64,000 nucleotides of DNA, taken from positions 41,540,001-41,604,000 of the forward strand of contig OZ260666.1 in assembly GCA_965285935.1 (NCBI GenBank). The letters are read 5' to 3'. The position numbers were made by a program, and so were the translations under genes. The stretch is from Ophelia neglecta (taxonomy: Eukaryota). The notes beneath the pieces were generated by a model. The model worked only from the letters and a program-made list of their open reading frames with translations, searched no databases and had not been told where the DNA came from. Shown here one piece after another: positions 16,892 to 61,508 of this stretch (positions are counted from its first letter, which is position 1; the number at the start of each line of letters is the position of its first letter).

Positions 16892-17059
16892 NNNNNNNNN
16901 NNNNNNNNNNNNNNNNNNNNNNNNNNNNNNNNNNNNNNNNNNNNNNNNNNNNNNNNNNNNNNNNNNNNNNNNNNNNNNNNNNNNNNNNNNNNNNNNNNNN
17001 NNNNNNNNNNNNNNNNNNNNNNNNNNNNNNNNNNNNNNNNNNNNNNNNNNNNNNNNNNN
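16892..17059. other. Assembly gap (168 N)
   Basis: Run of N. Confidence 1.
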
Positions 17060-35129: not shown

Positions 35130-37201
35130 CCATTGTCCGCAAGAACATGGACCCTATTATAATTGCCTGTTACAGAGAGGAACCGTCGACTTTAAAGTCA
35201 TACACTAATAAAAGCTTAGCGAAATGCAACAATTCTTGAACACACATCCACCACACCCCCCTCACACACACACATATATATGTGTGTGATATTGTTACCC
35301 ACTGGGAGTTGTTTTTACCAATTTATTCAATGAATAATGCCAATTGAAAAAAAGTAACCCGTTTAACGATTGAGAAGTATTGATTACCTAACTAAATTAA
35401 AGAAAGATATCTACAAACTCCAGCACTTTGAGCAAATTTAATAAAATTCCCTTTTCAAATAGATCTTTAGTAAAAGCCCTAACTTTACTTGTTTTGCTCT
35501 CGGGTCACTGGCTCCTGGGACAACTACAATCAATATAATAACCTTTTAAGAGATTGGCTAAGATATAAAATAAGTTGCAACGAATGACTCTCTTGTATAG
35601 TAGCCATATTGAGATCAAGGTTTAAAAAGTAATCACTAAGTGTAGCGTTGTTACTTTTTTAGCAGACTATAAACCCTAGGCATCAGCTATGGTATCAATA
35701 TAGGTGGGTTGAAACCAGGCCCAATACACCGGCGTAGATTGAGGTGCAGCGCAAGGTACATAGTGGTCGGGCCCACTTCTCCTTCCCATACGTTGCAGGA
35801 CAGAGAACCACTAGGTATCTTGGGATGAGCGTCGCTCCAAATGGGCTTCCTGAAATCCCAAACTCCCACCCAACCCCCACCCCCAACCCCCGCTGCCCCT
35901 TTGTGGTCAGTTACCGCCCACGAAATCTACCACGAAATCAGATGGCCTAAAAAGCCCACAGCATTACCCAAAATGGTCGACTCGCCGTTGCTGGCAATAG
36001 TTTTCGCTCGAAGAATGGAATTTTCATCCAAAGACAAGAAGTCTTTTTCATAGTTTTTTTAATATTTAAACAGAGGTTCCCTATCACCTGATTATCCGAA
36101 TGTAACATAAAACTCGAATACACCTAACCGTTTAGTAGTAAACGATGTCCAAATTGCTGGAAGAAGCCCAATATCAGAATACAAATGTTATGATTTGGTC
36201 CCTTTTTTTAGGCAAACCAGTGCTTGACCGGTCAGCGTGGCTACGTGTCCCATCCCTACCCCTGCCCTCTATAGCAGAACCCCCTCCTGTTCAAAGGCAT
36301 GGCAGCTCCGGGGTCCAACACCCAGCGGGGCAACCTAATCTATCTAAGTGAAGTACTAAAAAAACACTTTCAGTGATGGTTAATTTAAAAAATATCCCTC
36401 TAGATCTACTCCCAAAATAATCAACTTCCACTTTTAATCTATCAAAAGTATATGACTTTGTTGGCGATTGGGGGTTGGTGGCGCCCTAACAAGATGTTCG
36501 ATACATTATGGTGATTGCCGCATGTCCAGAATGACCCAGAAGGGGAGGGTTTTTGTAAACTTGGGCATACACAATTCATATTACATCCTTGACGGTCACG
36601 ATAGAAGCGGCTGTTGATTGAGGTGAACATGCCCCAACACGAGTCGCGGTTTAGGAGTCGAGACTTCGAGTTGATTGCAATGCAAATCTCTTATTTTGGT
36701 TGGCAAAGCACATGATATGGCTTACAGAGACAGTTAATTATTTGGCAGGCCAATGAATCACCTTCATTCTACCAAAGGTCCCATATAATACAGATAGTAA
36801 TGACTTCATTTTAGGGTCGCAGACATTTGGAGTGAAGAAGCTTTATTAGAATAGATTAGTTTCTCGTTACTTTCTTTTAATAAATGTCAGACTAAATGCA
36901 TTACATGATAATTATTCCCAAATTAAATACTAACAAAATCAAAGCTGTTGTACCTGTGCTGATTACTCTCAAAGTACTTTAGTTTTCATATGCATTGTCT
37001 GATATAGAAATGTTCGTTCAACTACATATATAATTGCCTTAGCTTCAATAAAATTAAGCCTTTTTAAAGTTAGAAAAATAAAAATAAACTACACCTTCTT
37101 TGATTCGCATAAATATAATCATTTCCTTTGTAATAATGCTACGTAATATTAAGCTATGTTAGATAAACTTATATCGTTAAAATGGAACCATCTTTTTTCA
37201 G

Positions 37202-37529
37202 ACTTGTTGGTAAAGGCACAGACGAGAAATCCCTGGTGAGTTACGATGAGCTGGACGAGGCCTCGGAGTTTGCCGATGACAGCACACGGCCACCGAAGAA
37301 TGCAGTGGACCACTGCTGCATGCGGACAGAGTATCTCTGTACGACTATCAGCCCCTGCTGCAGCTTCAGCACCAGGTTCACCATCGCCCTGTGGAGCAGT
37401 ATGGGATTTATCATTTCATTCGGCATCCGGTGTAACATGGGCGTTGCCATTCTGCAGATGACTGACCAGAAGGCTACCAGTAACTCGAGCACCAACGGAA
37501 ACGTCACAAACATCACACATGGATTCACG
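37202..37529 (+). CDS. VGLUT: VGLUT coding exon 2 (328 nt): cytosolic N-terminus, TM1, start of luminal loop
   Basis: Acceptor tcttttttcag ends at 37201; donor ACG|GTGAGT at 37530. Translates (R)LVGKGTDEKSLVSYDELDE...RFTIALWSSMGFIISFGIRCNMGVAILQMTDQKATSNSSTNGNVTNITHGFT. Starts phase 2, ends phase 0. The 3' end is the first of many tandem donors and the only one upstream of the TAA at 37548. Confidence 0.9.
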
Positions 37530-38126
37530 GTGAGTCACCCAGTAACATAATCAAATATCACACATGGATTCAGGGTGAGTCACCCAGTAACATAATCAAA
37601 TATCACACATGGATTCAAGGTGAGTCACCCAGTAACATAATCAAACATCACACATGGATTCAGGGTGAGTCACCCAGTAACATAATCAAATATCACACAT
37701 GGATTCACGGTGAGTCAGCCAGTAACATGATCAAATATCTCACATGGATTCACGGTGAGTCAACCTGTAACATAATCAAATATCTGACATGGATTCAGGG
37801 TGAATCACCCAGTAACATAATCAAATATCACACATTGATTCAGGGTGAGTCAGCCAGTAACATGATCAAATATCACACATGGATTCAGGATGAGTCACCC
37901 TGTAACATAATCAAATATCTCACATGGATTCACGGTGAGTCACCCAGTAACATAATCAAATATCTGACATGGATTCAGGGTGAGTCACCCAGTAACATAA
38001 TCAAATATCACACATGGACTCAGAGTGAATCACCCAGTAACATGATCAAATATCACACATTGATTCACGGTGAGTCACCCTGTAACATAATCAAGTATCT
38101 CACATGGATTCAGGGTGCGTCACTCA
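37507..38126 (+). repeat. 45-bp minisatellite (about 13.7 units) spanning the VGLUT exon 2/intron 2 junction
   Basis: Consensus GTGAGTCACCCAGTAACATAATCAAATATCACACATGGATTCA(G/C)G. Donor-position registers fall at 37530+45n (n=0..13) with no indels. Confidence 0.98.
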
Positions 38127-38399
38127 GGATTATAACCTGATGTACGAGCTGTGATCCGTCAGAGGGCAGGTTTACTCTACCTGAGTGTTAGTCCTCTTTC
38201 TGATCCAGTTTCCCTTTCTCTTAGGCTCTTTGTTGACCTTGCCCTGACCTCCTTTAGACCTGCCTTATATTATGAAAAAATAACCTTATTTGGCTACACC
38301 GTTCGAAGTTTGTCCGCGTGCGGTGGCGCAAACTTCGATCTTTTATTGATAATAAAGATAATCATGTAACCCCATGGAAATCGCTTGGTGTTATTGGGG

Positions 38400-39350
38400 A
38401 CTTTGACAGAAGTTTTGACCACCGCATGTATTCATAAATCCACCCATCAACTATATAGAAAATGACCTGTGCGTCGAAGCTTCGTGTCAGCTGGTTCCGT
38501 AGCCCATAGACTAGCGTGTCTCTACTGATCAGCATAACAGTTGGTGACCAACTTTCAAGCCCTGACCGAAAGTAATGTAGAGTAAAGAAAACTGGGAGCA
38601 AGATATTAATCACATATCACTAGCCTCTATATCTACATTGTTCTAGGAGAAATTAGTCATGAGTGGGTGATAGTGCCAATATATCTCGCATCTTTACCGT
38701 CTCCATTACACATCTGATTTTTCTGGTGTCTTCCCCTTATCAATGCAATTCTTTAAATAAAACTAATCGACGGTTGGTCTCCCTTCAGACGAATTATTGT
38801 CCAGATAGCTCTCCTTTCTCTTTCTCCTTCATAGGGTCCGTTTCTTTCTATTTCTATTTCCGCCGATTGCCTTCATTAGATACCCTTCCAGGTTCCGCGC
38901 GTCCTGTTCAGTATGCGCGTTCATAACACTGCCCTCAAATGATTCTTAGGTAGAAGAACGTTCCCCCAACTCTCGTTATTTTGATATTGCCATTATTCTT
39001 CAATGGCTCTGTCTTCTTCGTGTCCATTTCTCCGTTCGACCTGGGCTATCCCCATTTCTCTCTCTCCTAAGACCACCTATATCTGCCCCCTTAATATCCA
39101 ATACCCTATTGATCTCATACTTTTGCCCTGCTCACTCAAATTATCTGAATTTTACATAACGCGAGTAGCTCTTTCATAAATCAAATCATGTCCTTGTCAA
39201 AGTAAGCTCCTTTATTATACATTGGTTTTGATGTATATTCATTTTCCCCTCGTAATTGTTTTAAGCTTCTTGTATTGTTATCCTTCCGTTTTCATTTTCT
39301 TTTGACTTATTCGGAAGCCTAGACTCTATCAAGAACAGACACTTGAGAAA
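38400..39350 (-). mobile_element. Highly decayed LINE RT-like remnant(s) in intron 2
   Basis: Scattered minus-strand motifs: VLDIKGAD (cf. FLDIKGAFD), EMGI, RVGG followed by a GSVM-like segment, NCIDKGKTPEK, NILLP...YFRSGL. Many disablements; probably more than one fragment. Confidence 0.35.
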
Positions 39351-40462
39351 AAGTGGTTACCAGCTTTACTTCATAAGGCGTATTATTGTATGGAACAAAT
39401 CGTTTTCTTTTCGACTCGTTCCTGCTTGCAACTGTCATCGGCTGGGGGGACGAACTCGTATTGTACAGCCTGCCTGGAAAATATGTTGGATTCATTTGAA
39501 AGTAATAAGTTATTAATAAACTAAACATCATATTTCAATAACCTATCTCAATTAGATCATTGTTCTTCTTATCGTTCTCTTCTCCTTCTGACAAACGAAA
39601 TTGACCTATTATTATTATTGGACTGCGAACAATGAGTGCTCGACCTAGTTGCAAGAGGTCCAGGCTGATGGGGCTATAAGTCACTGGCATGTTGACATAG
39701 ATTGAGCGCGTGTCGGCCAATTTGCCAAGTCTCCCAGTAGAAAACCAGTCCTTTATAGGCAACTCGCCTGGGAGTTGGCTCACCCATAGAGGAGGAATGA
39801 CTAATTTCAAGACAATACTCCACTCAGGTTAGCTCTATCGCCAGCTAATTAAGTTTGGCACCTTTATGTCATCCATCCAGTTCTCCTGACCGTTACCATT
39901 TATCATCACAGTCTTCTAAAATGGCGGACAGGATACTGATAGCGTCTGCTAAAGGCTGTTTTTGTCTCACCTTATCATTCGTCTGCCAAGAAGAAAATGG
40001 CAGAAATATTCACAATGAGAATGCACTTCATTTGTTCATCGGTTCCAAACATCTGTTTTTACTGGTTTGTTTCTCCACTATTCGGTTAAATGGTTATGGA
40101 AATATTCCATGTTTTACCATTTTGCTTGAAACCATATTAATCCTGATTTCTAGGCGATTGCTTAGCTGATATAAGAAGGTGTCCGGGGTGGATCAAGGGA
40201 GCACGCACTTAGTCAGTGTCTAAGGAGCTAATTTGAGGTCATCTTAGTTTAATCTTGACTGGACTTACTATTATTAATGTTAAATGAAAATTTCTTTTAT
40301 ATCAAACTACCTTTGATGTATAGGTTATCGTTGCCGGTTTAACAAGATTTCTCTAGCGTCAGTGTCTTGTAGAAAAACAGCTAACTTCCAATTCTGGTGC
40401 CACTAGCAGTCACCAGATGGTCTCTCAATTGATAATGGTCATCAGTCATCTTCGGGGATTCA

Positions 40463-40614
40463 CCCCCATTACCCTCAGACCCACCGCCCCCACCCCACAA
40501 CCCCCGCCTTCTCCATCCCACCATCCCCACCCTCTCCAACACCTCCCAAACATCCTCACCTTCACCGCCCCCACCCCCATCCTCCTCCCGGGCTCACGCC
40601 CACCCTTCCCCACC
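40463..40614 (+). repeat. C-rich low-complexity tract
   Basis: Many CCC/CCCC/CCCCC runs with short spacers; G-rich on the minus strand. Confidence 0.85.
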
Positions 40615-42128
40615 TGAAGCCAAACGCCAGATATTATGAATTCCCCACATTACATAAGTGTGCTAGGTGACACACGATACCGTCAACTCACGCGAGTTGC
40701 CAATCACATGAAATTCATCTCATGACGTTGTCCATTGATTCCTATTAGGATATGCCTTGTTCACATAAAGTCATATTTACAGAGAATCGCTGGCCATAGA
40801 CGACTCAGTCAATGAGTCAACGCGTGTAGCGCGATATGGTCGTGAGTCACAATAAATTTAACGTCGGCAAGCACCCACAGAGTGCCATTAACCAGAAGTG
40901 ATTCAATTGCATTTCCCAGAGACGATTTCATAACTATCGTTTTATAGCTTCAGACCTGCTCACGAGAGATTCTAATATTTCAATTCTACTTCGTTCGAGC
41001 TCTTTTGCTGTGATAGACTTGATGACATCGACGTTCTAGGCTGTCAATATTTATGATCCGACAACAAGATTGTTATGGATCGGATTGATCATGAATGGCC
41101 CACTTCATGGCTTTCTCTAATACTTCCGTGACCCCATTCGGCCAGCTAGAAATTCTGAAGTCATGTCTCCAGAAGGTATTTGGTTCAACGTCCACTAAAA
41201 AGCCATCATCGGAAGGCTTCGCAATTTTGGCTTTTATTTTTCAAGGTCTTCATGCATCTAATTAGAAATTTTATAATTTATTCTAAATGGCCAGAAACAT
41301 TAATGTGCAGCATATTATAAGCAGTAGCAGTCATTGGCTATGGGCGGTTATTGCCAGGCTTTAAGCACATTTGTAAGAAGTCTTTATCGTGTTTCTCCCG
41401 TGTATCAAATTTGGAAGCGCAATACATCCCGGGAGCATGAAACTTTTTTTCAAGATCAGCGTATAATAATTCACATGTACTATTGTATAGCAGTGCTCCC
41501 ACTTTAGGCTTGGGTTATTTTTACTTCTTGACGTGACACTACCCATTTCCGACCATAGTTTCGAGTGTCCATTTGTCGTGTGGTTTAAAGATTCGCTTTT
41601 GTGCCACTTCCGCCTGACAGCAGCATCAAAACATATTTTGTTCTCTTTGACAGATCATGAAAAAGTAAGAATAGTTGTCCAAACCCGATTTAGCTGATCA
41701 ATAGGAATCCATTTGGGTGTCCGTTAAAGGGGAGGAGGCGCTCCCATTATGCGGTCAAGCGGCAGGAATGCTTGACGACACTTTATGTCGTTTAGCTTTA
41801 GATAGATCTAATGGAATCAATGACTCAATCCACTGTTACCTATTTTATATAATCATGTCGATTTTTTGGCGTTCGGGGCACAAATAAAATACTAGGCCTT
41901 ATTATATTTATGCATTCAGAGCATCTATGGATATACTCAGGGAGAAAGAATTTATAAAAATAACTTTGAAATAACTGGTTACAAAAATACAAAACACATT
42001 AAAATCTGTTTAGGTATAGTTGTAGTGGAGTAATGAAGATTGGTGCATTTTCGCGGGCAAGAATTTGAGTGAAATTCACAAAAATATCCTGCTGGCGATT
42101 ATTTCATGCGGGTTCGTAAGATTTGGCG

Positions 42129-42288
42129 ACTTAGGCTTAGTCCCTTACTTTTCCCTAGTCCCTTATTTAGGGACTAGACCTAGTGCCCTACTTAGGCCTA
42201 GTCCTTTACTTAGTAGTCCCTTACTTAGGCCTAGTCCCTTACTTAGTCCTTTACATAGGCATAGTCTCTTACTAAGTCCTAGTCCTAA
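42129..42288 (+). repeat. Degenerate ~20-bp tandem repeat (cttaggcctagtcccttact-like)
   Basis: Repeated tagtcccttactt / cttaggcc motifs, including an internal inverted pair CTAGTCCCT-tattt-AGGGACTAG. Confidence 0.85.
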
Positions 42289-45200
42289 TTTTGCCGAGGA
42301 AATCACATTCCTCGTTTTTAAAGGAATGGCTTAAAATATAACCAGTTAGAATTTTCTTGCTGGTGATCACTTCTTAGCAGAATTTGTGTTTCCTTGCTTA
42401 TACCAGATACATCCAAAGTCGTCTGGAATATGAAAACATCAAATTTCTCTTTGAACTCGTGTCCTTTAGCTCAACACTTGACGCACTATCGTTTTTGTTC
42501 CCGGATTCTGTTGCATTAAAGCATTATAATATTGACATGCTTTATAAGAGTAAGCAATTAGTAGGAATAATTTGATGGCGATCTTCACAGGCACCCCTTA
42601 GCTTTGTTCAGTTAACTAATACAACCCTGTCGATTATTTACGAGTGCTTTTTGCGTATCCCATAAAAATGCCACAAATGTCCTATTGAAGTTGGTTTAAT
42701 TATTGACTAGGTAGAACATGTCATTTACTCTTAATGTATGAGCTGTGTGTGGGCTTTTACGTGTACAAGAAATTGAGCATGCGGGTTGATATGATCCTTT
42801 TTTGGTTGGCTGTTTTCCAAGGGTATCATGTTTCATTCAGTTTAAGCCAGCGGTTGCTATAAGCCCTGATTACGCCGCGTTGCTTTTCTTTAAACTGTGT
42901 CTATATATACAAGATAATATACAAAATACATATAAACAAAATAATTTTATTATTTAGACTAATCTCTTCTGATCATAAGTAATAATAAAATTCTTGGTAA
43001 CAGGGGCACATTATGCCAAATACAATTTTACAAATGGTTTAATTGGGGAGGCTGGCAATTTGCCATAACGGAAGGGTTAAAGTGAAACGATAGGCCTACA
43101 TAAATGTAAATATTAACAACCGCTCGGATGGACGCAACTTCCGGGATACCCGGAATGTAAATTATACAAGCTTGAATTAAAGATTTTATTAGTTTGATTC
43201 ATTTACACTTTCCTGGAAATTAAGCAATAAAGGACTATTCTGTGAGCACTCACACCTCGCTTTGGCACAATCGGAAGTGTCAACATGAAATCAAAGCAAT
43301 TATTTGTTTGACCTTCTTTTTTAAAAGGACAATATATCAAACGTTTTGAGGTGTCAAATGGAAAGTGATGGGTTGAAAGATCGTCTAGGCCTATGAATAT
43401 TTGATGTAAGCCCGCGCTATGCAATGAAGTCAAGCTCACGTCGACAGATTATTGCGCGTCTCGCCACAAGTAAAATGTACCCTGTCTCTTTCAACAAGCA
43501 CTTAATGGCGGCACCTGCATCGATCTCTCTTGTTCCAGCTATCTTGACACTGAAACTCTTTTAAATTATGGAGTCAACAAATGTCACTTTGATACCTGCT
43601 TTGTTTGTGTGACTCTGTGGTCGATATGCTAGTTTCGTTTGACCCTAAAAGCAGACGACATGTGGATGCACACAACCCTGTCTTTGCTGCACACGACCCG
43701 CCATCAGATGAGTATGAGATCTGTGGGTTGGGAGTCGATGCAGACGATCACATAACACCTGAGAGATCTCACATCGATTTATTTAATGGCTGACTACACC
43801 ATTTATCAGCGTTTTTGAGAACCAAGCCTGAATTTTGACTGCGAAATTTGCATTTTGTCGCCAAACTGGGTTTATAATCTCGTTGCTCAAATGCTCATGT
43901 ACCTGTTTTGTCCATCTTAGTAATAATGCATGTAATTAAACTATTGGTGTTAATATATGCGAGCATCACTACTGTATATTTTAAATATAGCATGCAGTTA
44001 AATGGCATTTTTACAAGTTGACATTTGTGTGAAGTGTTTAATGTGTTCCCAAAGTGTGTGTCAGTATTTGATTGTGAAAATCGTTTGGGATCGACTTCAC
44101 AATCAACCCCAGTAGAAATATAATACACGTTGGAAATTGGCTTATTCACTCTGCAGAGAAGAATAACCAAAAAAAAAAGTTTGCCTTCCAGGTATAAATA
44201 TTACACCTAATATAAAGCCATTTTGTTCATACTAGTTTTTCGCGATCTGAACTTATCTGATGGTAACTCCGGTAGTGTGCGGGACTGCCTTGCTCAGTAT
44301 CCTGGGGCGGGGTGGGACACTGATGATTTAAGTGTATTATTCTGTTAGTGGGTAAATTCATTCCAGGGCCGACCTTACTAGGAGGAGAGTTAAGGTATGG
44401 AAGCTTTGATCCGATGTGCAACTTCATTTATTATTGATGCCCTCATATATCATGTCGGGGAGAGAGTGTGTGCATTACCTGGCCCATTGAGAAGAGCTGG
44501 CTAAAGTGCTCCGCTAACCCCAAATAAAACTACCAAATAAAAACACAGTGTCCAATGCTAAAAGCATACATATGTGAGTCGTGTAAAAGGCCGGCGTAAA
44601 CACCTTTTTGAATTATTAACGCCGCCTTTTTAAGCGCTTTTGAACTAATTGACTGGTGCAGCAATACCTGCAAACAAATCTGGCCTTCTTTCGAAATACA
44701 CTTTCAGCATAATATTTATATTGTTCTAAGCGGAATTGTTTATAATATTGTTACTTTATCTTGTAAGTACCATAGGCCTTATATCTTAATTATTGCTAAC
44801 AAATAAGGCCTTTTATACGATTGGAGCGGTTGTGTCATACTTTTGTCTTTATGTCCGTCGAATATTTATGAAGTAATTAAAATATGGAGGCTTTTAGTGC
44901 TTAATATTTGTGTTGTAAATTACTCTATATATATTTATCTTCATTAATATCATTGACCCTTTTTTATTCAGTTTACAATGAAAAGAAATAAAGTAAAAAA
45001 AACAAATGAAATAACCCCTATTATTCATTATGATTGTCTCTTCAGAAGCACTTCCGGCCACTACATAAGTGACAAAAAATCATAGAAATGCCAACAACAC
45101 TATCAACATTAATATTGCGACCATTGTGAAACTTGTGAAGGAAGAGGTTGAGGTTTATGAGATTATACGATGATATGATCGCTTATTTCGATCCGATTGA

Positions 45201-48200
45201 TAAATTATGAACTCTTTAATTTCAATAGAGTCAATATTAACAACACAATTAAAATAGTACAACGTTAATCTGCATGAATCTTGGCACATCCTGAAAGATA
45301 TAACCTTTTATAATATTGAAATCGTCCATTTTGATATGGGGGCAGCATAGGGTTTTGTGATTGTTTTTAATAAATATATAAATATGAATTTCAGATGCAA
45401 CTATAAAATTGCAAAAGTTACACAGTTTAGCCAATTCCATGGAAAATACGAAAAATACCATTTTTTTAATGGACGTCATCACCATTTGTTTAATGGACAT
45501 GTTATTTATATGACATGGAAATTCCTAATGATAATAAATACGTCCACAAAAATAATATGAATCCTTGTGGATGTAAACATTTACATCACCTAATAGTGTG
45601 CTAAGGTGGTTGATAGAGATATTAACAATAAATGTCCGGATGATGTGTTTTCCGTATGCGAAGTATGTTGATTTCACAAAGTTTAATTTCCACCTTGGCA
45701 CAAATATGATCGAGTTCTAAACACGTACGGAATGTGAAGTTTTCTCTATGACCCCGACAATAAACAAACTGAGACTGTTAATGACGTCCAATTATCTGGC
45801 TACGGTGGGATACATATAGGCAAAGAAATTACATTACTATCATTTGTAGTGAGGCAGCACGAAATAAAATCATTTCCGTCAAAATGAATAAGGCTGAAAG
45901 CAATTATAATGCCATGCTGAAAAAGGGTGGTATTGTAAAATATGCTACTGGTAAATGAAATAATTCCATCTTTTCTTCTCTGAAATGGGTTCTACTTACA
46001 TGTATGTATGTCTTAGTGTATTATCATAGTATGAGGCCTGAAGATGCCAATTACTCTTTCTCATTCTAAGAAGACATACGATATCTTAAAGAATAAAGTT
46101 TCGGACAGACAAACCATCATGGGAATATTAATATTCATTTGAATGTAACTTACTTGACATTTAACATATTAATTGATGTAGACGCACTATTATCTACTTT
46201 ATAAAAATTAGTGTTTCTCCAAGGGGATGCAATGAAATAAATTGGATTAAACAAGAACAGATGTGCAAGCTATGGGTGTGGCAGAACGTCGGGAACGCGC
46301 AGTTCATATTTTATTGCGTGCATCGTTTTCCTTTGGCCGCCATAACTCATCTTTTCTTGTCGTTATATTTTAATCATACAAATTCTAAAGAAATACATTA
46401 CTTAGCAGGATAATGTTATAACGTTGACTCCCTTGATGAATATTATGACCATAAGTGTAAGAATCTTTTGCAGTTCAAATGGCGAGGTGGAATATGGTTC
46501 TATTTTCTGGAAGCTGGATCAGTGGTCACATTAACTAAAATTGATTTCGCGTTATAATTTGATTTCGGCGAGATGGCGCCACCGTCCTGTATCACCAAAG
46601 CTTTAATGTGTTTGACTTTCTCTGTTCTGGCAGTCGAATCAAGCCAAGTTTGCCTTTTTCAGGGTTTCCAACCGCAGGTTGTATGATTGAGTAACGATGC
46701 GTGCTCAGGGTGACTCAACGAGTCATAAACGCCAATGGTTTGACTATTTTAGCCTCGTTTAATACGGTTTCGATAGCCAGGGGTAACGTATGGTAAATTA
46801 TCTCATTATTGACTGACGAACAGGGCTCAATAGCCTCAAAGCTTTGATTACACCATGTGACAGTGTACAGGTTAATGCAGTGTACTGGCCTCATGTAAAC
46901 ATTGTTGACAGTGATCAAAGCCTCCCAGCCACATCACTATGAAACCCGCCGAGTCAGCATCGATTTCGGATACATCGACATGTTTATTGTCACGCCAGCA
47001 GCGATTCCCGCTCCAGCTTTTGTTGGCTATGTTTGCTGACAATTTGTTGCTGTTTCTGATGTGGTTTTGAGTCTGCCATGTAAAGTAAATGCGTTTTGCC
47101 AAATACATTTCAATCAATCATCCTGGGTCCTTTAATATGAGTGACCCGGATGAGCGAATAACGAGACAATGCCCAGTCTGTTCAAGTCATTTCATGGAGG
47201 AATAAAATAAAAATATATAATTTAATGGTCCCAAATGAGCGACTTTTTTTATCTAAGAAAGAATTTTTTTTAGGGTTCGTGGGTTCCCTTAGAAACATCT
47301 CACGCTAGGAGGAGCAGATTTCATTTGCGATAAATCTCGAGTTGTATCTCCCTCACACTGGTACTGTTGCACCGTTTGGTCGGCCGTGCGACACGAATGA
47401 TTTTCCCTGTTGCTGGCATGACATTTTATCGGGGGCAGGTCGAACAACATGTAACAAAGAACTAGTTAAACAGTGTTGAAGCCAAAAAGCTTTGCCGGTC
47501 GATGTCGGGGATAGATTGCCCCAGGTATGTTGAAACCGGCACGTTTGACAGTAACTTTATTAAACGCGCTAATGTGATAGGCTATGGTGTATGGTGGGCT
47601 GATGTTGATTGGATTTGAGCGTGGGAGCTGTAGCCAATAGTTTGGCATTCCCCTGCGAAATATCAATAAAATTTAGGGACGGAAGCAGAAGCTCAGAAGA
47701 ATGGGTACATGGAGACAGTAGAGTATACGTTCAGGGGCAGCTCCCTGGCACCCTTGCCATGCACATTAAATCCGTCCCAGAAATGTACAAACAAGTGGGC
47801 GGCCATGGTCGACTCAGTTGTCCTTTATGTCTTCAGTATTAGGAGGTTTGCTCAATTTGGCCTTCGGTGTATATAAACCAAAATGGCTCCCAGCCCTCTT
47901 CCCGATTAACTTTGTAGGAGTATACTTTTTATAATACAAGTTATTTGTAAATAAGGGATACCGCGCCGTTTTTGGATCAAACCATATTTTTAGACTTATA
48001 AACATGAGGGAACATTTGTGTGCCCATGTGTACATAGTCACTTCACATCAGTTCAGTCAGCCCGTTGTGTATCTGCGGAAAATAGGGCATGAATATTAAT
48101 ATTAAATCAAATATCTCAATATGCCCCAATGTGGGGCACATTACGAAAGTCCCTGGGCCCTGAGTGACAGTATTTACGAACAAATAAATCCGTTGGTGTT

Positions 48201-50199
48201 TTTGATATTATTTTGTTTGTTTAAATGGTCCTTTTGTTGCCAGTAATATTATTTGACCTGCCCCCCGGACGATGTCTTGCCAGCCACATGGGGAAATGAT
48301 AGGATGTTGTGAATGGCTTAAATATATTTCTTCTCCCAAAATACCCCGATCTCCATCCCTTATTTACAGAATCTTGCATTACGCAATGACACCTATATGA
48401 GCTCTAAAATAAATCGTGAACAGAACGGGGAGAACGCTGTTTTATGTAGATTGTGGAACCAATGAAGCAAACCCCTAATACAACAATGTAAATATTCCCG
48501 GCCACTTGTTTAATAATTCCAATATCTGAAATGATGCTCTGAAATGATGCCACAGTTGACATTCCAAAGAAGAATTATATGGCCATATATTGTAGTGTCG
48601 AGAATTCACCCATTTGTTGCAGAAACTTGGACTAGATATGACTTCAAAAATTTAAGCAAATGCTACAATAACAACCTCAAAAGAAGATGGTCATCTTTGG
48701 GGTTTTATTTAGAATTTGTGGCCATTTCATAAATATTAAATTGTATTAAAATAGTCAAACTTGAACTTGGAGTATTGAACTTGTTCACAGTCTAACTGAA
48801 TATTGTCCCGAAGAGCACCGAGTCCCAGTGCTTCCAAGATGTCAACGTGTCCTTATGAGAAAAACAAAACAAAATATGCTCTGAAAGATGGATTTGAAGT
48901 TAAAAGTAAATATTGATATATTTCAATATAACTTGATAACACTGGATATTGCATAGTTATAGGCTATTATGAAATAGAACTCTCGATAAAGCTTGCTTAA
49001 TCACTACTTGGCGGAAGAAAAAGACATATTTGCCTCCATCGTCTTCCTTGCCACTCGTTTTTGTATATAGACTTCCTGTTTGAAAGGTACGCTTTCCCTA
49101 CTCATAAATCGATGACACCATCAAAGTCAGGGGTTATTGGACCGAAGCCATATAGTAGGGTAAACCAATGAACACCTTTGCTACAAATTACCCCGGTGTC
49201 TTCTCATGTGGATTGCTCATTTTGTATCCAAACCCAGTCTATAAGCCTAGAGACATTTTTGTCAGGTTTTAATTTCCTTCAAACTATCATTATGGAATTC
49301 TTCGGTCGGCAATGCATATCCTCGGGCATATGCGCCTTAAACTTCATTATTATATATTACGTTTACTCATTATATATATATTTGTATATTGCCTGCTATT
49401 GACAGGAAATATATTGCTAGACTGGATGGTACACCTTATGGGATCAGCCAAGGAATATAAACCCCCTCTTTGATGCTGATTAGTTTGCTAATTAGTGCCT
49501 TTTTAAGTCCGAAATGGATGTTGTTCCATTCTACCGCATGGTTCTATTCCTCAAAAAGAAAATGATATCATAAATATGTACCGTAAGAGATTGATCGGGG
49601 CTATAAATAATCTTTAGATTCTCATATGCCCTCCCAGATATCTGTCACCTGAAACCAAAGGTATCACAACTACAAAAGGTAGTGTTCAATGCAGATGCAA
49701 TGATAGACCGCGTCTAGGTTTACAGAGAACTGCTGAAAATTACCATCCGAAAAAGTCACAGCAGGAAATAGATCAGGAACCGCAAAGCCAGTGATATGGA
49801 ATAATCATCTCGGAAGGATTTGTAAGTCGGGAGAGCATGGGGTAGGGCCCAAACGACCAGGTGGCTGAGCGCCCGGATCAATAGGAGTTGAGCAGATTAC
49901 CGTCTTTTATCTCCCCGCCGCACCTGATCGGGGACTAGGTATGCAGGCTAATTAAAGAAGCTGATTATATTACCGCCCATTGTTGCCCGACCAGCAGCTA
50001 TGTTTACGTAAAAACCATTGATATAAAAATGCTGATTCCTAGGCAGGTAAACGTGTAGCCATCAGTGCTGTATACTCTGCATGGCAAGATGTCTATCGAT
50101 GAGAATGTACCTCGAGGTACAGTGACAATAGCTAGCTGGCGTATCGGAAAAAATCATCTGTTTCGTGATTATAAACGAGCTCTAGGTCTAATTAACATT

Positions 50200-50930
50200 T
50201 AAACGTCTGAAAGCTGCAATTGTCCAAATGATAAAAAGCCTGTAATTTTCCGAAAGCAACCATTAATGACAAGCTGAATGGCACGCAGGTATAAAGCTAC
50301 GTTACATTCATGTGTATCGATCAGTCCCAACTCAAATATTATACTTTTTGTTCTACTAGAAAATGTAGGAGGTACACGGTGAATGCAACAATCTACTGGG
50401 CTTTGCCTGGAACCCAATTTCCTTCTTCCTGCTATGGACGTTTATAAACTATCTTTGTTCGCACAAAGTGCCTTCTTTACCAGCGTTTATGAATATTAGT
50501 ATGTAACCAGATTATCCAGGCAATTGTGTGATCCAAATGTCAAACGCATTTGCGATATTAACAAGTTTATTCTATATTAAACGTTTATAGCTCACGAATC
50601 GCGCTTCCGCCAGGGAATGGCTAAATGGGTCGACATTTATCTGTGATGTTTTGCACTTATACACCCCGATCACCAGAAAGTACATTCCATTAGAGAACTT
50701 CCTCGGTAGAGGTGAAAGAATGCTTCGCCAGGCGACCATCTACTACAAACATTCTCTAATATCCTCCAAGCTTCCAAGCTTCCTCTCCGTTCTTTTACCT
50801 TTGATAACGTACGATCCTTCCAAGGTGGAAAACACACCGGTAAGAGGGTGTATTAGTGTATCAAAATCCGAGACTTCTAAGGAAGTATTGTCATCACTTA
50901 TGTTGATAAATGCATTTGAATAATGATTCA
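50200..50930 (-). mobile_element. Decayed LINE RT-like remnant
   Basis: Minus strand, in the expected order: DKCRPI (cf. DLRPIS), LVNIANAFD (cf. LVDFSKAFD), WVPGK (cf. GVPQG). Many stops. Confidence 0.4.
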
Positions 50931-53061
50931 CAGTGGCATTTTTTCAACTCATCATTCGCACAACAAATGATTCTAAATAGTAAATAAAACCCTTCAATCA
51001 GATATAAACGTATAAAGCAATTGAAAGAGATGAAAGCGTTTGTTGAATTTAAAGAACATAATTGTAATACCTACTATTTTTTGGAACTTGTACATGATTA
51101 TGGCGCTCTAATAGCTCCAAGGCCAGGTGAACTATGACGGCTTCAGCCCGGGACAGGTGGCTCAAAAGGCAAAGTTCACCTATGCCCATCAATTGTCGGG
51201 CTTAAATTAGATTTTTTCCCATCATGGCATATGTAATACTCAAGGGAGTTGTCTTATTGTTTCTGAAAAGGGCAATAGTGTATTACTGCATGAATGAATT
51301 GCTATCGCTTATCTTCTATCATAATGTGGGAAAGGCCTTAGGACTACAAGTACCATAAAAGAGACAATTGAAGCAATAATTTATGAATAAGTAACACGCT
51401 TTTTTATAAAAAGGTGTGCGTCGACGTTGATTCATATAATGTAAGGCGGCACAGAAATGATGAATTTAACCTTTTTACGATGATCAGCGTCCAAGATAGA
51501 ATGTTCAAAGTGTATAAGAACAACCCAAGAAAAAGTATTATTTGTAAAAAATCAAAAATCTTCTACTGCGTGAATCGTACAGGAATAGTCTGTAATGACA
51601 TGATTTGATTTTATGTTTAATGGAAGATTTGAATGGTTAAATTCCTCATACAATACAACCAAGTTAGAGTGCTGTGTGGGAGTATACAAAGATTAAGAAG
51701 TTATATTTAGAGAAGAGGATCGGATCAATACAAAGCCAGGCCTCCAGCGATACCCTCCTCCTACTCGCCCATTGTCTCTGCTTCGATCCAGATCACATTT
51801 AATTGTGTTGACATGGTCGGTGAACGTGACAGATTGTTAGAATTTGTATTGGTCGCGTGTTTCTTCTCTTTGATTAAATGTAGTTTATCTTATCATAACT
51901 TCTTGTCCCGTTGCAAGAAAACTTTTTCTTTGAGAGCCTAATGGAATCCACGGGCGTGGGTTTGTCCTTCCGGTCTGCTCCTCTACGCGCGGCCATCAAG
52001 TCATTATGAGTGATAACTCCTGTTAGGATCTTTAAGGCCCACGTGTGTTATTTAATCAAACAGCTTTCATCTTAAAAAAATCGTCTGCTAGACTGCTACA
52101 ACCATTCCTCTTCTTTAAGTCCGACCAATGACCTTGTTGATATGTTGCCAATGTAACTCAGTTTCCCGATATTCTCACACGATATGTTTTGTATTAGACA
52201 TATATCAATCTTAGGACACACATCTTCGATGTCATATACTAGCTTTTGTTGAACAGCATACTGGTCTTAATAATTGTTTAATGTCTTCAGATTTGTTACC
52301 ATGACGCCCCATGTCGCCCTTAATCACATGTAATTATTTTTCCTGGATACAAGCAGTTTCGTTATTCTGTAGTGACGGTATAGTAGTTTCGTAGAGTTCC
52401 AAGAGAGAAAAGATTCAATTGGTCAACTGATAGAACTGTAGATATAAACGAATTAGCCCATATAGTAATGTGCCCACTGAGTGTTGAGTTGTTTCTCATA
52501 AATTCGTACAGATGCGGCCATTGTTTTAGGAAGAGTGGTGCCTCTTCCCTTGTACGAATTATTATCACAGAAACATTTTTGTTTGGAATTTGTGAATCAA
52601 CTACGTTCAGTCAAACTTTAAAGGGCAACGATGGACACGTAAATCATATTGTTTGATAAGTATTCTCTTTTCTAACGCGTTTGCTCAGTTTTAGGGCAGG
52701 TTGTCATGGAAACCATCGTTTGGCCATTCAAAACTACACAATAACCAGACGGTATTATCTGAATCATAAAACACACTTTATGTATATTTGGATCAATAGT
52801 CCAAATGTTGCCCATATGAAGACATTTATAGATCTAACGATACAGTCCTCAAATTTCATTGTATTAATAATTTTGTTATGTTGGCCATTTATCTGATCTG
52901 GGTTTAGAAAAAAACTGTTTTGAAATTAACCATGCTCTGATTAGGGATCTTTCCAATGGGTAATGAGCCCATAATGGTTAATTTCCATTAATGTTTCATT
53001 TAATCTTATTTATTGGAAACTGGTTGTGAAAGAAGTTGAAATTTCATTTAAAGAACTTCCC

Positions 53062-53353
53062 TGAAGCGTGGCCGAGTGGTCTTGTCCGCCTCGCAAGTGG
53101 GAGATCGGGGTTCGCTTCTCGATCGCGTCAAACCTAAGAGGTAAAAATAGCTCCCCTGCCAGGCGCCCGGTATTTCAGGACTGGTTAACCCGGTGTCAAT
53201 ATAATGTGACTGGGTGGGGTTCCCTGTCTGGTGTCTACGGCAGTGAGGCAGCACTATAAAGAGGGCACTGGGCCCACTGTCACAAGTAGGCACTGTGGCG
53301 ATATGACCGATAAGTGTTGAAAGCCACGAAAAACCCCAAACAACAACAACAAC
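53062..53353 (+). mobile_element. tRNA-derived SINE (about 290 bp) with a central domain resembling V-domain SINEs
   Basis: Pol III box A TGGCCGAGTGG (53069-53079), box B-like GGTTCGCTTCT (~53109), body GACTGGTT..CCCGGTGTCAATATAATGTGACTGGGTGG...CAGTGAGGCAGCACTATAAA, and a (CAA)n tail. Possible short TSD CCTGAA at 53060 and 53353. Family assignment is from recalled resemblance only. Confidence 0.85.
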
Positions 53354-56300
53354 CTGAATAATAGGGGGTCTTCCATGTACCTTTCTCAATAAACACTTTC
53401 GAAGTCAAAAAATGGTAATAATCATCACAATTGTGGCATTATTTGGATTAATATGGAGAGTTTTTGCGTATTACCGTTATATTATTATGTGCCTCTATTT
53501 GTTTAAGAATATAGCCTATATGAAATAAGTATATTGTTTTCCTAGCTAAGGCTTATGTTCGCTTCCTTTGTTGTCATTAATTTTACAACATGTTTCAACG
53601 GCCGGCTTTCTGTGAATAAAAGCTAATTATGAAAATTGATGTGTATTGCACCATGCCGATGCCAGGACTTCATAGAATTACTGCCAAAGGTCCATGATTA
53701 ATTACAGCAAAACATTCCTAGTTTTCTCACATGAAAACATATGATGATGCAAATCCAGTTTCATAGTTATGAACGTGCCCTGTTCTGAGTTTTGGCCCCT
53801 AAACCTCAAGGGTTGACCCTCGGGCTACCCGCACCACTCTTATAGTTTTACTGGAATATGATATTTTGTTTTTTTTTTTTTTTTTTTTTCAGTTGTTGCT
53901 TTGTTTAACCTTTTCCTGGCTATTTTGGTGTTTCTTCCGCGTATTTACAATATCTTTTGTTTGATAAAAAAACAATCTTGACTCAAGCACTGCCCTGTAT
54001 TTTTCCAACTCTTGCCATTGGCGACGTTGTGCAATCTATTGTTTGTGATAGGTGAATAAGGTAGGCATGTTCTAATTTGAAAAAAAAACCACAATCAGGT
54101 TTTCAGAGAATTTGAAGTAGTGTGCACAAGCTTTTAACCTATTACGGTGTGAAGAGCTGAGTCGTGTTTGGTTAGAAAATGATACGTGGCCCTGGAAAAC
54201 AAGATGCGAAGTAGTGTTCCTCTGCTTATACATGACCTGTATTGTACTCTTCTATCTTACAACCTCTCGTATATTTGGTCACATGACCATATATTTTTGA
54301 CCCCTATAGATCAGAAAGTGGAGTGTTAGGTTCATTATATACATACAAAAGAACATGAGGTCAACTTTATGTTTATTAATATGACAAGGCTTTCACCAAG
54401 GCGATATAGGCCTAGAATGACCGTTAAGTAAATATATGAAAATACAAAGTAATTAACCCAAAGCATTGAGTTCACCGTAGTTTTTTTTACTTATTTGTTT
54501 GATAATCGGGAAGAAATTGGCTAATTAAGTTGTCGTCGTTAAAATATTTACCCTAGAACAATTGTATCCAAGCCAATTTTCTTAATTACTTTTTAATGTA
54601 CCACTTTAAGGAGTGAATATCCTTCGATTATGTATCTATAATGAATAACCTGTTCTTTTAACAACAGATGTTGCGCAATAAGACTGCTAGTTTAAGCTAA
54701 TTGATTGTTTTATTGAAGTGGAAGAAGTTGGTTTTGGATTGTCTGCTGAAACCAAGTTGTCCGTATTTAATTAAATAAATGAGGAATGAGTAGCAGGTAA
54801 GAAGATGATTTTGGAACGTTGTTACGTCATCGCCGACCCTCGGGAGTAGTTTGTGTCCAATAATTAGACGTTTTGGCTGACGTGATTATATTTAGACAGC
54901 AATTGGGTGACCATTATCTGTTTAATGGCGAAGCAATGCATTCTCCAAGTGAGCTGTGACCTCTTGTTAAAGCAATGACTATAAACGAACAGGCTGACAT
55001 TTTTATTTCTCAAACATGAAAGCAGGCTGTACAAAATAATGTCTTGTGCAGAACCACCTACATAATTTGATTTATAATGATATATTATACATTTACAGGT
55101 TTGGCATTTTCAATGTGAATAGCTAATGCGTTCCTCCGGGATAGTAATACTATTCAAGGTATTAGCAGAAGTATGTTTCGCCTCTTTACATCTACGCCGT
55201 GAGGCTGCAAGCGCCCACACATTTCCTTGCATGGCTTCAGAAAAATGCAGAGCCTCTATTGAAAACTGCTAAGATAAACTCCTTGCGAAGGTTCATCAGT
55301 TAATGGGCGGCTTTATGGTGATCTTTAGCTTGCTTATTCAGTTTTTATATAATAAGGTAGGGGCCTGTAGGCGGTATTTACGTCGAACTGGTTTGAGAAT
55401 CTTAAGAATTGTATCAAAGATTTGGTAACCCATGCCGACGTATTTTCTTTCACCTTCCGCTTAGAGCTTCCCACTCAACATTCCGAACTTATTTACATCG
55501 CGAAAACAATGCAGTTCTGCATTATAAGGCATTGTGTTATCGCCAGCATTGTTTGATTTGTGCTATTCCATTATCCATTTTTATGATATTAGCTCTCCAC
55601 GTTTTATTTATCTCTACAGGGCTTTTGGCCTTGGATAGGTATCGCTCCTTATACCAATATATTCAGCATACTTATTGTTAATATTATTACGTTTCGAAGG
55701 TTGTCTTTCCCCGACATGGTACAATACCACGTTCCACCCCCATATGCCTTCACCCTTCGGGGGCTGCTGTATGAAAGGAATTTCAGACTGTCACCTCCTA
55801 GCCCATATACCCAGGAAGAAGACATCAAAAATGCCAATATTTATGCTCATACTGAGGGAAGGCAATTCTGTGTGTCCTCTAGCCATTGCCGCTGGTGAGA
55901 CAATAAAGAAGGTTATAATACATTCAAAGGCTAGTCTGCACTAATTTACTCCAAGTCATATAGGAGCGCATTGACAAGAGATGAGATATTGGCCGGCGGC
56001 ATGACTTAGGAGGGCTAATTTGGTAATGAATGAAATATGGGATAAAACCAGCTTTACTGACTAATTATTGCCAGAGGGAAGAAACTGATGAACCCAAACT
56101 CAGAGTTATTTATTCATGGCAATCCCTTTCCATTCATGAGAAAAATAGCATGTTACCAGACTCTATGCTACAGGCTATAGTCCTTCAAAGATCTGTATTG
56201 GTGTTATCATGCATAACTCCTCATGCTGCTCTATACAAATTATTTTTCATTTTTAATATTTTAAAGATTAATTAGTAATTGGTTTTTTTTACTGTTTCTG

Positions 56301-56744
56301 AACATACCGGTCCGTATGAAAATATAATCCGCGCTATAGAATAGTACGAAAAAGAGCTCATAAAACAGATAGGCCTGGACAGTAAATCATACGAGATCGA
56401 TGATAGATAAGCATAATTTTATAAATATTGAAAACCAGCTGGTTCGGATTTTTGATGTTATACCAGTTTAATCACTATAAAAAAACTTCTTCAATAAACC
56501 CTGCCTATTTGTCGGACATCTGCAAAAAGGGGTCTTAATATAAAGATATCTTTGAATTCCTCCCATGATATGATTCGAACAAAGGGTATAGCCACATATC
56601 GGTTTGTAGGCTATCATTAACAATATATAGTCAAAGTTGTTTCCTCCAGAAAGCATACCGCTATTGAGCAAACTTTTTTTCTATCTTTGAAAAACAATGC
56701 TTAAGCTTGTCCTTGTCCTTGATAACAAAGTTCTATCTTTCTAG

Positions 56745-56863
56745 AAGCCGGAATTCGACTGGAGCCCCGGAACGATAGGCTTAGTGGACAGCTCGTTTTT
56801 TTGGGGTTACCTTATAACCCAGCTACCAGGAGGGTATTTAGCTTCTAGATATCCAGCAAATAG
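56745..56863 (+). CDS. VGLUT: VGLUT coding exon 3 (119 nt)
   Basis: ttctatctttctag|AAG...AATAG|gtatgg; [39 protein letters not shown](R). Confidence 0.95.
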
Positions 56864-61381: not shown

Positions 61382-61508
61382 TCTCTCTGTCTCTGCCTCT
61401 GTCTCTGTCTCTATCGCTCTGTCTCTCCGTCTCTGTCTTTATGTCTGTGTGTCTCTGTCCTCGTGTCTCTCTGTCTCCGTGTCTCTCTGTCTGTCTGTCT
61501 GTCTCTCC
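61382..61508 (+). repeat. (CT)/(CTGT) compound microsatellite
   Basis: Read directly; starts about 50 nt into the intron after exon 8. Confidence 0.92.

Follow-up and report, generated by a model that had tools for sequence, protein, structure and literature searches.

In the lophotrochozoan Ophelia neglecta (assembly GCA_965285935.1), the 5' splice site at the head of a long intron in a VGLUT gene is repeated many times over at a fixed interval. The question raised by this locus is which of the donor copies is used, and how such an arrangement came about. The stretch of DNA analysed, referred to below as the window, is 64 kb of contig OZ260666.1 (positions 41,540,001 to 41,604,000), and nucleotide coordinates are those of the window, the features of the gene and of its array all lying on the plus strand. 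TRF reports one array, a 45-bp minisatellite (nt 37507–38127; 13.8 copies, 90% matches, no indels, score 1004), which is the strongest tandem repeat of the window, the runner-up scoring 374. Its repeat unit consists of the final 23 nt of a coding exon followed by the opening 22 nt of a 19.2-kb intron.

For the counting of donors, the array was divided into 45-nt units and each was set against the consensus. Fourteen donor positions result, at 37530+45n (the slash in the motifs below marks the exon/intron junction). GTGAGT is intact at ten of them (37530, 37575, 37620, 37665, 37710, 37755, 37845, 37935, 37980 and 38070), and the GT dinucleotide at 13, the exception being 37890, which reads AT. 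The nonamer ACG/GTGAGT occurs at 37530, 37710, 37755, 37935 and 38070, and a copy reading AAG/GTGAGT is found at 37620. No higher-order repeat structure was seen, unit identity being flat over lags 1–8. The period corresponds to 15 codons and all copies are in phase. The frame of the exon (...NVTNITHGFT) would continue across the first donor as VSHPVT and then meet an in-frame TAA 18 nt inside the intron (nt 37548–37550); each subsequent unit also carries an in-frame TAA or TGA. Among the 14 donors, a stop-free, in-frame join to the next exon at 56745 is available only from 37530. The initial annotation of this DNA had described the same unit composition, the recurrence of the donor every 45 nt, the same tallies of intact and altered copies, their common phase and the inclusion of the TAA by any downstream donor, and all of these were reproduced by TRF, the unit table and the frame translation.

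Two further features of the array may be recorded here. Its 5' edge (nt 37499–37517) lies on a 9-nt direct duplication, AAC-GTC-ACA / AAC-ATC-ACA, whose halves encode NVT and NIT, neighbouring N-glycosylation sequons of lumenal loop 1, and which could be the microhomology at which slippage began. In addition, the AP-1/TRE heptamer TGAGTCA is present in 11 of the 14 units (nt 37531–38077), within the near-palindrome GGTGAGTCACC, and the window as a whole contains 19 occurrences where 8.1 are expected. The heptamer appears in the units because the donor GTGAGT continues with CA. The outcome is a homotypic cluster with regular spacing where the intron of a neuronal gene begins, and it probably came about incidentally, as the unit was amplified.

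The exon that ends at the first donor (nt 37202–37529) specifies the N-terminal cytoplasmic tail, TM1 and the start of lumenal loop 1. Three exons of the gene were each compared singly with PDB sequences. The first of these, nt 37202–37529, matches VGLUT3 (2e-10), VGLUT2 (1.5e-7) and sialin (2e-3). The next exon (nt 56745–56863; KPEFDWSPG..., 39 residues plus two bases of the following codon, ending at the donor TAG/GTATGG) matches VGLUT2 (4e-14, residues 114–153) and sialin (2e-6), and an exon near 59.6 kb matches VGLUT2 at 4e-18 versus sialin at 6e-8. Pfam MFS_1 is found on two exons of the gene, with a value of 3.9e-8 at the exon starting at 56745. Eight open, conserved exons could be followed up to 63.5 kb, typical VGLUT motifs occur in the downstream segments, and the gene extends beyond the end of the window. 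Judged by these matches, which lie nearer to VGLUT than to sialin in all three exons, the gene is assigned to VGLUT (SLC17A6-8-like), in agreement with the identity first proposed for it. A word search with the exon for a protein of this species returned none; its matches were all read-through ORFs on genomic contigs belonging to relatives.

The intron that the array heads is a phase-0 intron (nt 37530–56744), lying between the exon ending in GFT and that starting with KPEFDW and closing at the acceptor tctag/AAG at 56745. On VGLUT2, the upstream exon aligns with residues 63–102 and the next with residues 114–153, so that the 19.2 kb contain no further coding exon; the join GFT/KPEFDW falls within the variable lumenal loop 1. 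The upstream exon itself opens at an acceptor, ttttttcag/A, at 37202, which is common to the closest relative found (see below), so that at least one exon must precede it and the label 'exon 2' is plausible. An in-frame ATG at 37179 (MEPSFF...) was considered as a start and rejected, as it lies ahead of a polypyrimidine tract and acceptor and is missing from the relative; ORF-based gene callers would nevertheless set a false start there (stretch nt 37179–37201). Elsewhere in the window, a TC-rich repeat (14 bp × 7.7, nt 61382–61492) lies about 50 nt past the donor AAG/GTTAGT of the exon ending in FDIAK and is not donor-anchored, and there is a run of N at nt 16892–17059.

Tandem repeats are readily mis-assembled, and none of the contigs from the public runs reaches from one end of the array to the other, so that mis-assembly of the array, or of its length, has to be considered. 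The array was checked against Logan short contigs from three runs of one sample, the only public runs found to contain the stretch, none of them recorded as RNA. The contigs break inside the array and cover its flanks on both sides, and from all three runs they match different combinations of array-internal variants exactly (for example nt 37678–37762 and 37733–37803). The depth of array contigs relative to the flanks was 4.2, 2.5–3.3 and about 1 for strings that occur 4, 3 and 1 times, respectively, in the assembly. Since both variant junctions and depths in the reads agree with the assembled array, it is not an artefact of assembly and its copy number is about right; the initial annotation had named such an artefact as an outcome that would undo its reading, and we now regard it as scarcely credible. 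One unitig of the array is at half depth, hinting at a heterozygous variant in this one sample. Across nt 36155–39440 there are about 16 single-base differences between reads and assembly in 4 kb, some of them present in only one or two of the three runs, which points to either high heterozygosity of the individual or pooling of the sample. The same comparison drew attention to nt 38587–38642, further into the intron, where about 50 nt are held in common with several contigs that continue into unrelated sequence, at doubled depth; this is a small dispersed repeat.

The 45-bp unit is confined to this locus. When the whole 762-Mb assembly was searched with eight units, only the VGLUT array was matched, so that derivation of the unit from a transposon or a dispersed repeat is ruled out. 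The exon at nt 37202–37529 likewise occurs once in the genome, and no SLC17-like exon from elsewhere in it exceeds 52% identity to a conserved exon of the gene, so that this looks to be the only close VGLUT gene of the species.

Comparison with relatives gives the direction of change. The closest relative found is a contig of an ENA assembly with 74% amino acid identity. Its exon is of equal length, aligns without gaps and ends homologously (NVTNITRSFS versus NVTNITHGFT), and a single donor, TCG/GTTAGT, is present at the homologous position; no tandem repeat was found near this exon, and the array is also absent from two more distant relatives. Because the relative shares the exon end and the donor without having the repeat, the exonic half of the unit is ancestral and the array derived; on this comparison the array is a later, lineage-specific growth. 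Exonisation of an older intronic repeat was considered as a source of the exon end and is ruled out by the same repeat-free relative, with its equal exon end, length and donor position. Between the two species the exon has a dN/dS of 0.10, which points to purifying selection; dS is about 1.9 and saturated, so it provides no useful date for the array.

The strength of each donor copy was predicted as the duplex energy with the U1 5' end of this genome, whose U1 genes carry the canonical sequence ATACTTACCTG. The authentic site (ACG/GTGAGT, nt 37527–37535), identified as such by its being the sole donor to keep the VGLUT frame into 56745 and by its homologous position in the relative, has a predicted energy of -9.4 kcal/mol, as do its four identical copies. 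Four AGG/GTGAGT copies reach -10.1 kcal/mol, and the AAG/GTGAGT copy at 37620 (nt 37617–37625), with eight contiguous pairs and a full fit to MAG/GTRAGT, is the best U1 match of the array at -10.7 kcal/mol. That this copy suits U1 better than the true donor had been noted beforehand and is borne out by these energies. The four damaged copies range from -2.8 to -6.5 kcal/mol. Seven other donors of the gene could be placed, at -6.1 to -11.8 kcal/mol. By predicted duplex energy, then, the nine intact pseudo-donors match real donors in strength and five of them exceed the authentic one.

Nothing in the copies suggests that they have been protected or destroyed. Substitutions in the GTGAGT core number 4 in 84 positions, compared with 34 in 546 in the rest of the unit (Fisher p = 0.8), so that neither decay nor protection of the pseudo-donors is supported, and the absence of any excess or deficit is as expected for copies that are neither selected for nor harmful. 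No conservation signal was found on TGAGTCA within the units. Masking of the pseudo-sites by RNA structure was also considered. The unit contains the near-palindromes GGTGAGTCACC and TGGATTCA, and the array folds better than shuffled sequences (z = -2.9); the predicted ensemble is diffuse, with all donors similarly, and mostly, paired. The first donor is predicted to be slightly more open on emergence (0.43 versus 0.12–0.33), and masking was rejected because predicted folding does not set this donor apart.

Minisatellites that straddle an exon boundary are known from other genes, and by its anatomy the VGLUT array belongs to this F7-type or 'mirage' class. In human F7, the junction of exon 7 and intron 7 lies inside the first monomer of a 37-bp minisatellite that is polymorphic (Borensztajn et al. 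2006, PLoS Genet, PMC1557585). Of its 5–9 identical donors, only the most upstream is used. The pseudo-sites work once the upstream sites have been destroyed, and they still fail to compete when raised to a consensus value of 91, yet in minigenes a full-consensus CAG/gtgagt placed downstream does compete, with 70–90% use and partial retention of the upstream site (PMC1557585). Pseudo-sites that keep the frame are likewise unused (PMC1557585), so that 'latent site suppression' by reading frame, to which the initial annotation had alluded, does not fit F7. The F7 VNTR resembles the VGLUT array in having the authentic donor in the first monomer, with pseudo-donors of the same or nearly the same sequence recurring behind it at constant intervals, and in the premature stops that would follow from use of most downstream sites; it has served as a model for 5' splice-site choice. 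It differs in that its unit includes 4 nt of exon and a weak TGG/gtgggt donor (consensus value 74) in 5–9 copies, whereas the VGLUT unit includes 23 nt of exon and a strong GTGAGT at 14 positions. Unlike in F7, the VGLUT period preserves the reading frame (45 nt, 15 codons) and the authentic site is surpassed by a pseudo-site. Donor use has been measured in F7, whereas in the VGLUT array it is predicted.

Donors are also reiterated within the intron by the minisatellites of IFI6 (6-16) intron 2, CBS IVS13, LMNB2 and PDGF intron 4. In the account of these genes given with the F7 study, the authentic site and the first two pseudo-sites are used in IFI6 (which has 25 pseudo-sites) and in CBS intron 13, and the authentic donor alone in LMNB2 and PDGF (PMC1557585). 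The extra-donor isoforms of IFI6, as that account has it, are in frame and translated, whereas the VGLUT array presents a stop in each extra unit. Amphioxus provides an invertebrate parallel: its 'mirages' are outlined as minisatellite-like tandem duplications of exon/intron boundaries in globin and Adh3 genes, unstable in length and without disturbance of normal splicing (Ebner et al. 2010, PMC3087553, citing Canestro et al. 2002). They resemble the situation in Ophelia in that, so far as that outline goes, several genes of one invertebrate carry such boundary duplications. According to the same outline they differ in belonging to a cephalochordate, in involving both 5' and 3' exon boundaries and in having units of up to about 160 bp, whereas the cases observed here are lophotrochozoan and all donor-anchored. 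An opposite rule comes from artificial globin substrates tested in the Eperon laboratory, in which duplicated strong 5' splice sites at least 45 nt apart show nearly exclusive use of the downstream, intron-proximal site (PMC3413131). These substrates resemble the VGLUT array in having strong U1 sites at least 45 nt apart and a single 3' splice site. However, they are artificial, with two sites and short introns, and they favour the downstream site, whereas natural minisatellites favour the upstream one.

Taken with these precedents, the VGLUT array is probably best explained as a lineage-specific minisatellite of the F7/'mirage' type that is near-neutral and spliced almost only at the first donor, 37530. 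A 45-bp segment across the exon/intron boundary would have been duplicated in tandem, and slippage or unequal exchange would then have enlarged the duplication to about 14 units, a growth that would have left a 19-kb intron headed by 13 copies of the donor motif. The spliceosome would take the authentic donor almost exclusively, leaving the nine other intact GTGAGT copies silent; leakage, if any, would be slight, would most plausibly come from 37620 and would yield transcripts carrying a premature stop. The array itself would be without function, a near-neutral by-product of a mutational tendency common in this genome.

Both the choice of donor and the neutrality of the array are points that we infer. 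First-donor use is most likely by analogy with other species, mostly mammals. Strict choice of the first donor was one of two alternatives offered in the initial annotation, and it agrees with the published findings for this type of repeat; the donors that the title of that annotation calls 'competing' are candidates for competition. The gene itself is intact and constrained and the next-closest exon has only 52% identity, from which it follows that productive splicing from 37530 must predominate. Four observations count against exclusive use of the first donor. The predicted energies of the pseudo-donors (-9.4 to -10.7 kcal/mol) lie within those of the genuine donors of the gene (-6.1 to -11.8 kcal/mol). 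The site at 37620, AAG/GTGAGT, is nearly the CAG/gtgagt that competed in F7 (PMC1557585), and since it fully matches MAG/GTRAGT it is the sole copy with a published reason to compete. Predicted RNA folding does not distinguish the first donor from the rest. Finally, the intron-proximal rule of the globin substrates, which is the opposite of the F7 pattern, applies at exactly the 45-nt spacing of the array (PMC3413131).

The second alternative of the initial annotation is appreciable use of the downstream donors. Any later donor would add 45n nt containing a stop, and at least seven exon junctions lie downstream, so that the product would be a target for NMD or a one-TM fragment. VGLUT pre-mRNA would then be lost in proportion to copy number, and array length would act as a heritable rheostat. 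In its favour are the ten strong donors left intact at a 45-nt spacing, of which five surpass the first in U1 match, and the in-frame stop in each unit, together with the intron-proximal preference of strong duplicated sites at least 45 nt apart (PMC3413131), the competition by a near-consensus downstream site in F7 minigenes and the use of the first two pseudo-sites reported, in the brief treatment of those genes, for IFI6 and CBS (PMC1557585). We nevertheless consider it unlikely. Since this looks to be the only close VGLUT of the genome and purifying selection on its exon is strong, it is improbable that the animal could tolerate losing much of the product. The natural arrays studied, as far as the F7 report and the outline of the mirages cover them, confine use to the first one to three sites, and the donor cores give no indication that selection has either maintained or eliminated them. 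Arrays of the same kind also occur in unrelated genes of this genome (see below), which a by-product fits better than a gene-specific regulator.

A near-neutral by-product must also be weighed against an array that is kept because it is beneficial, either as a platform for U1 snRNP, aiding 5' splice-site recognition or guarding against premature cleavage and polyadenylation, or as an intronic enhancer with 11 AP-1/TRE motifs. U1 'telescripting' protects long introns, and repeat number in F7 has been linked to F7 expression; here ten U1-complementary sites start a 19.2-kb intron, and the enrichment of TGAGTCA in the units and in the window has been given above. However, the relative manages with one donor and without an array, and neither the donor core nor TGAGTCA shows a conservation signal within the units. 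The AP-1 motif, moreover, amounts to GTGAGT plus the CA behind it, and was copied with the unit. A beneficial role of this kind therefore appears very improbable.

Donor-anchored arrays are not restricted to VGLUT. In a sample consisting of the window and 200 kb adjoining it, ten minisatellites were found (period at least 15, at least 4 copies), and two of the ten are anchored on a donor, the VGLUT array and a 43-bp array (7.7 copies; L026:7737-8066, G000:C9:41447737-41448066) about 130 kb away. The unit of the latter consists of 10 nt of exon end and 33 nt of intron, with the donor AACAGG/GTAAGT, and the exon beside it matches BBS2 (PDB 6vbu, 1.3e-8). A further case lies 9.2 Mb upstream of the window on the same chromosome (L010:2592-3001, minus strand; G000:C9:32.31 Mb), where a coding-like, Ser/Thr-rich open frame runs into CAG/GTATAT and this is repeated each 35 nt (35 bp × 11.5). 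The initial annotation had treated the array as singular to VGLUT, a view that does not survive the finding of arrays at the BBS2 exon and in L010; its suggestion of a scan for other repeats straddling an exon boundary was taken up in these stretches, and it is for them that the answer is positive. Two other arrays carry donor-like motifs. In L010 a second array (nt 430–833, 25 bp × 16) has a unit containing CTG/GTAGGT on the opposite strand, and at L018:7963-8548 a 39-bp × 15 array has a unit containing CAG/GTGTAT, with no upstream open frame seen. The latter may be a donor-like motif to which no exon belongs, or else an array of some age with an exon that escaped notice.

If donors are assumed to occur once per 5–10 kb, a density that was assumed and not measured, a random array would span a donor in less than 1% of cases. 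By this rough estimate, two of ten is far above chance. The excess might reflect a genome-wide process that seeds minisatellites at 5' splice sites beyond chance. Such a process could be mutational, with polymerase pausing or R-loops at donors leading to template switching, or selective, if stacks of U1 sites heading long introns aid recognition or curb premature polyadenylation. As a general explanation this is quite improbable at present.

Taken alone, the VGLUT array is a further boundary minisatellite, of a kind known from a few human genes and amphioxus. It offers a clean natural test of 5' splice-site choice, in that ten strong, near-identical donors stand 45 nt apart and the upstream-scanning and intron-proximal rules predict opposite outcomes for it. 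It is also a caution for annotators, since in arrays of this kind the donor can be put in the wrong place by gene prediction and by RNA-seq alignment. The frequency of these arrays in this genome points to an unexplained tie between splice donors and the birth of minisatellites, and why minisatellites should arise at donors so often here is the more interesting question, one that the small sample supports. Were the selective version of such a process true, copy number would tune the expression of neuronal genes such as VGLUT.
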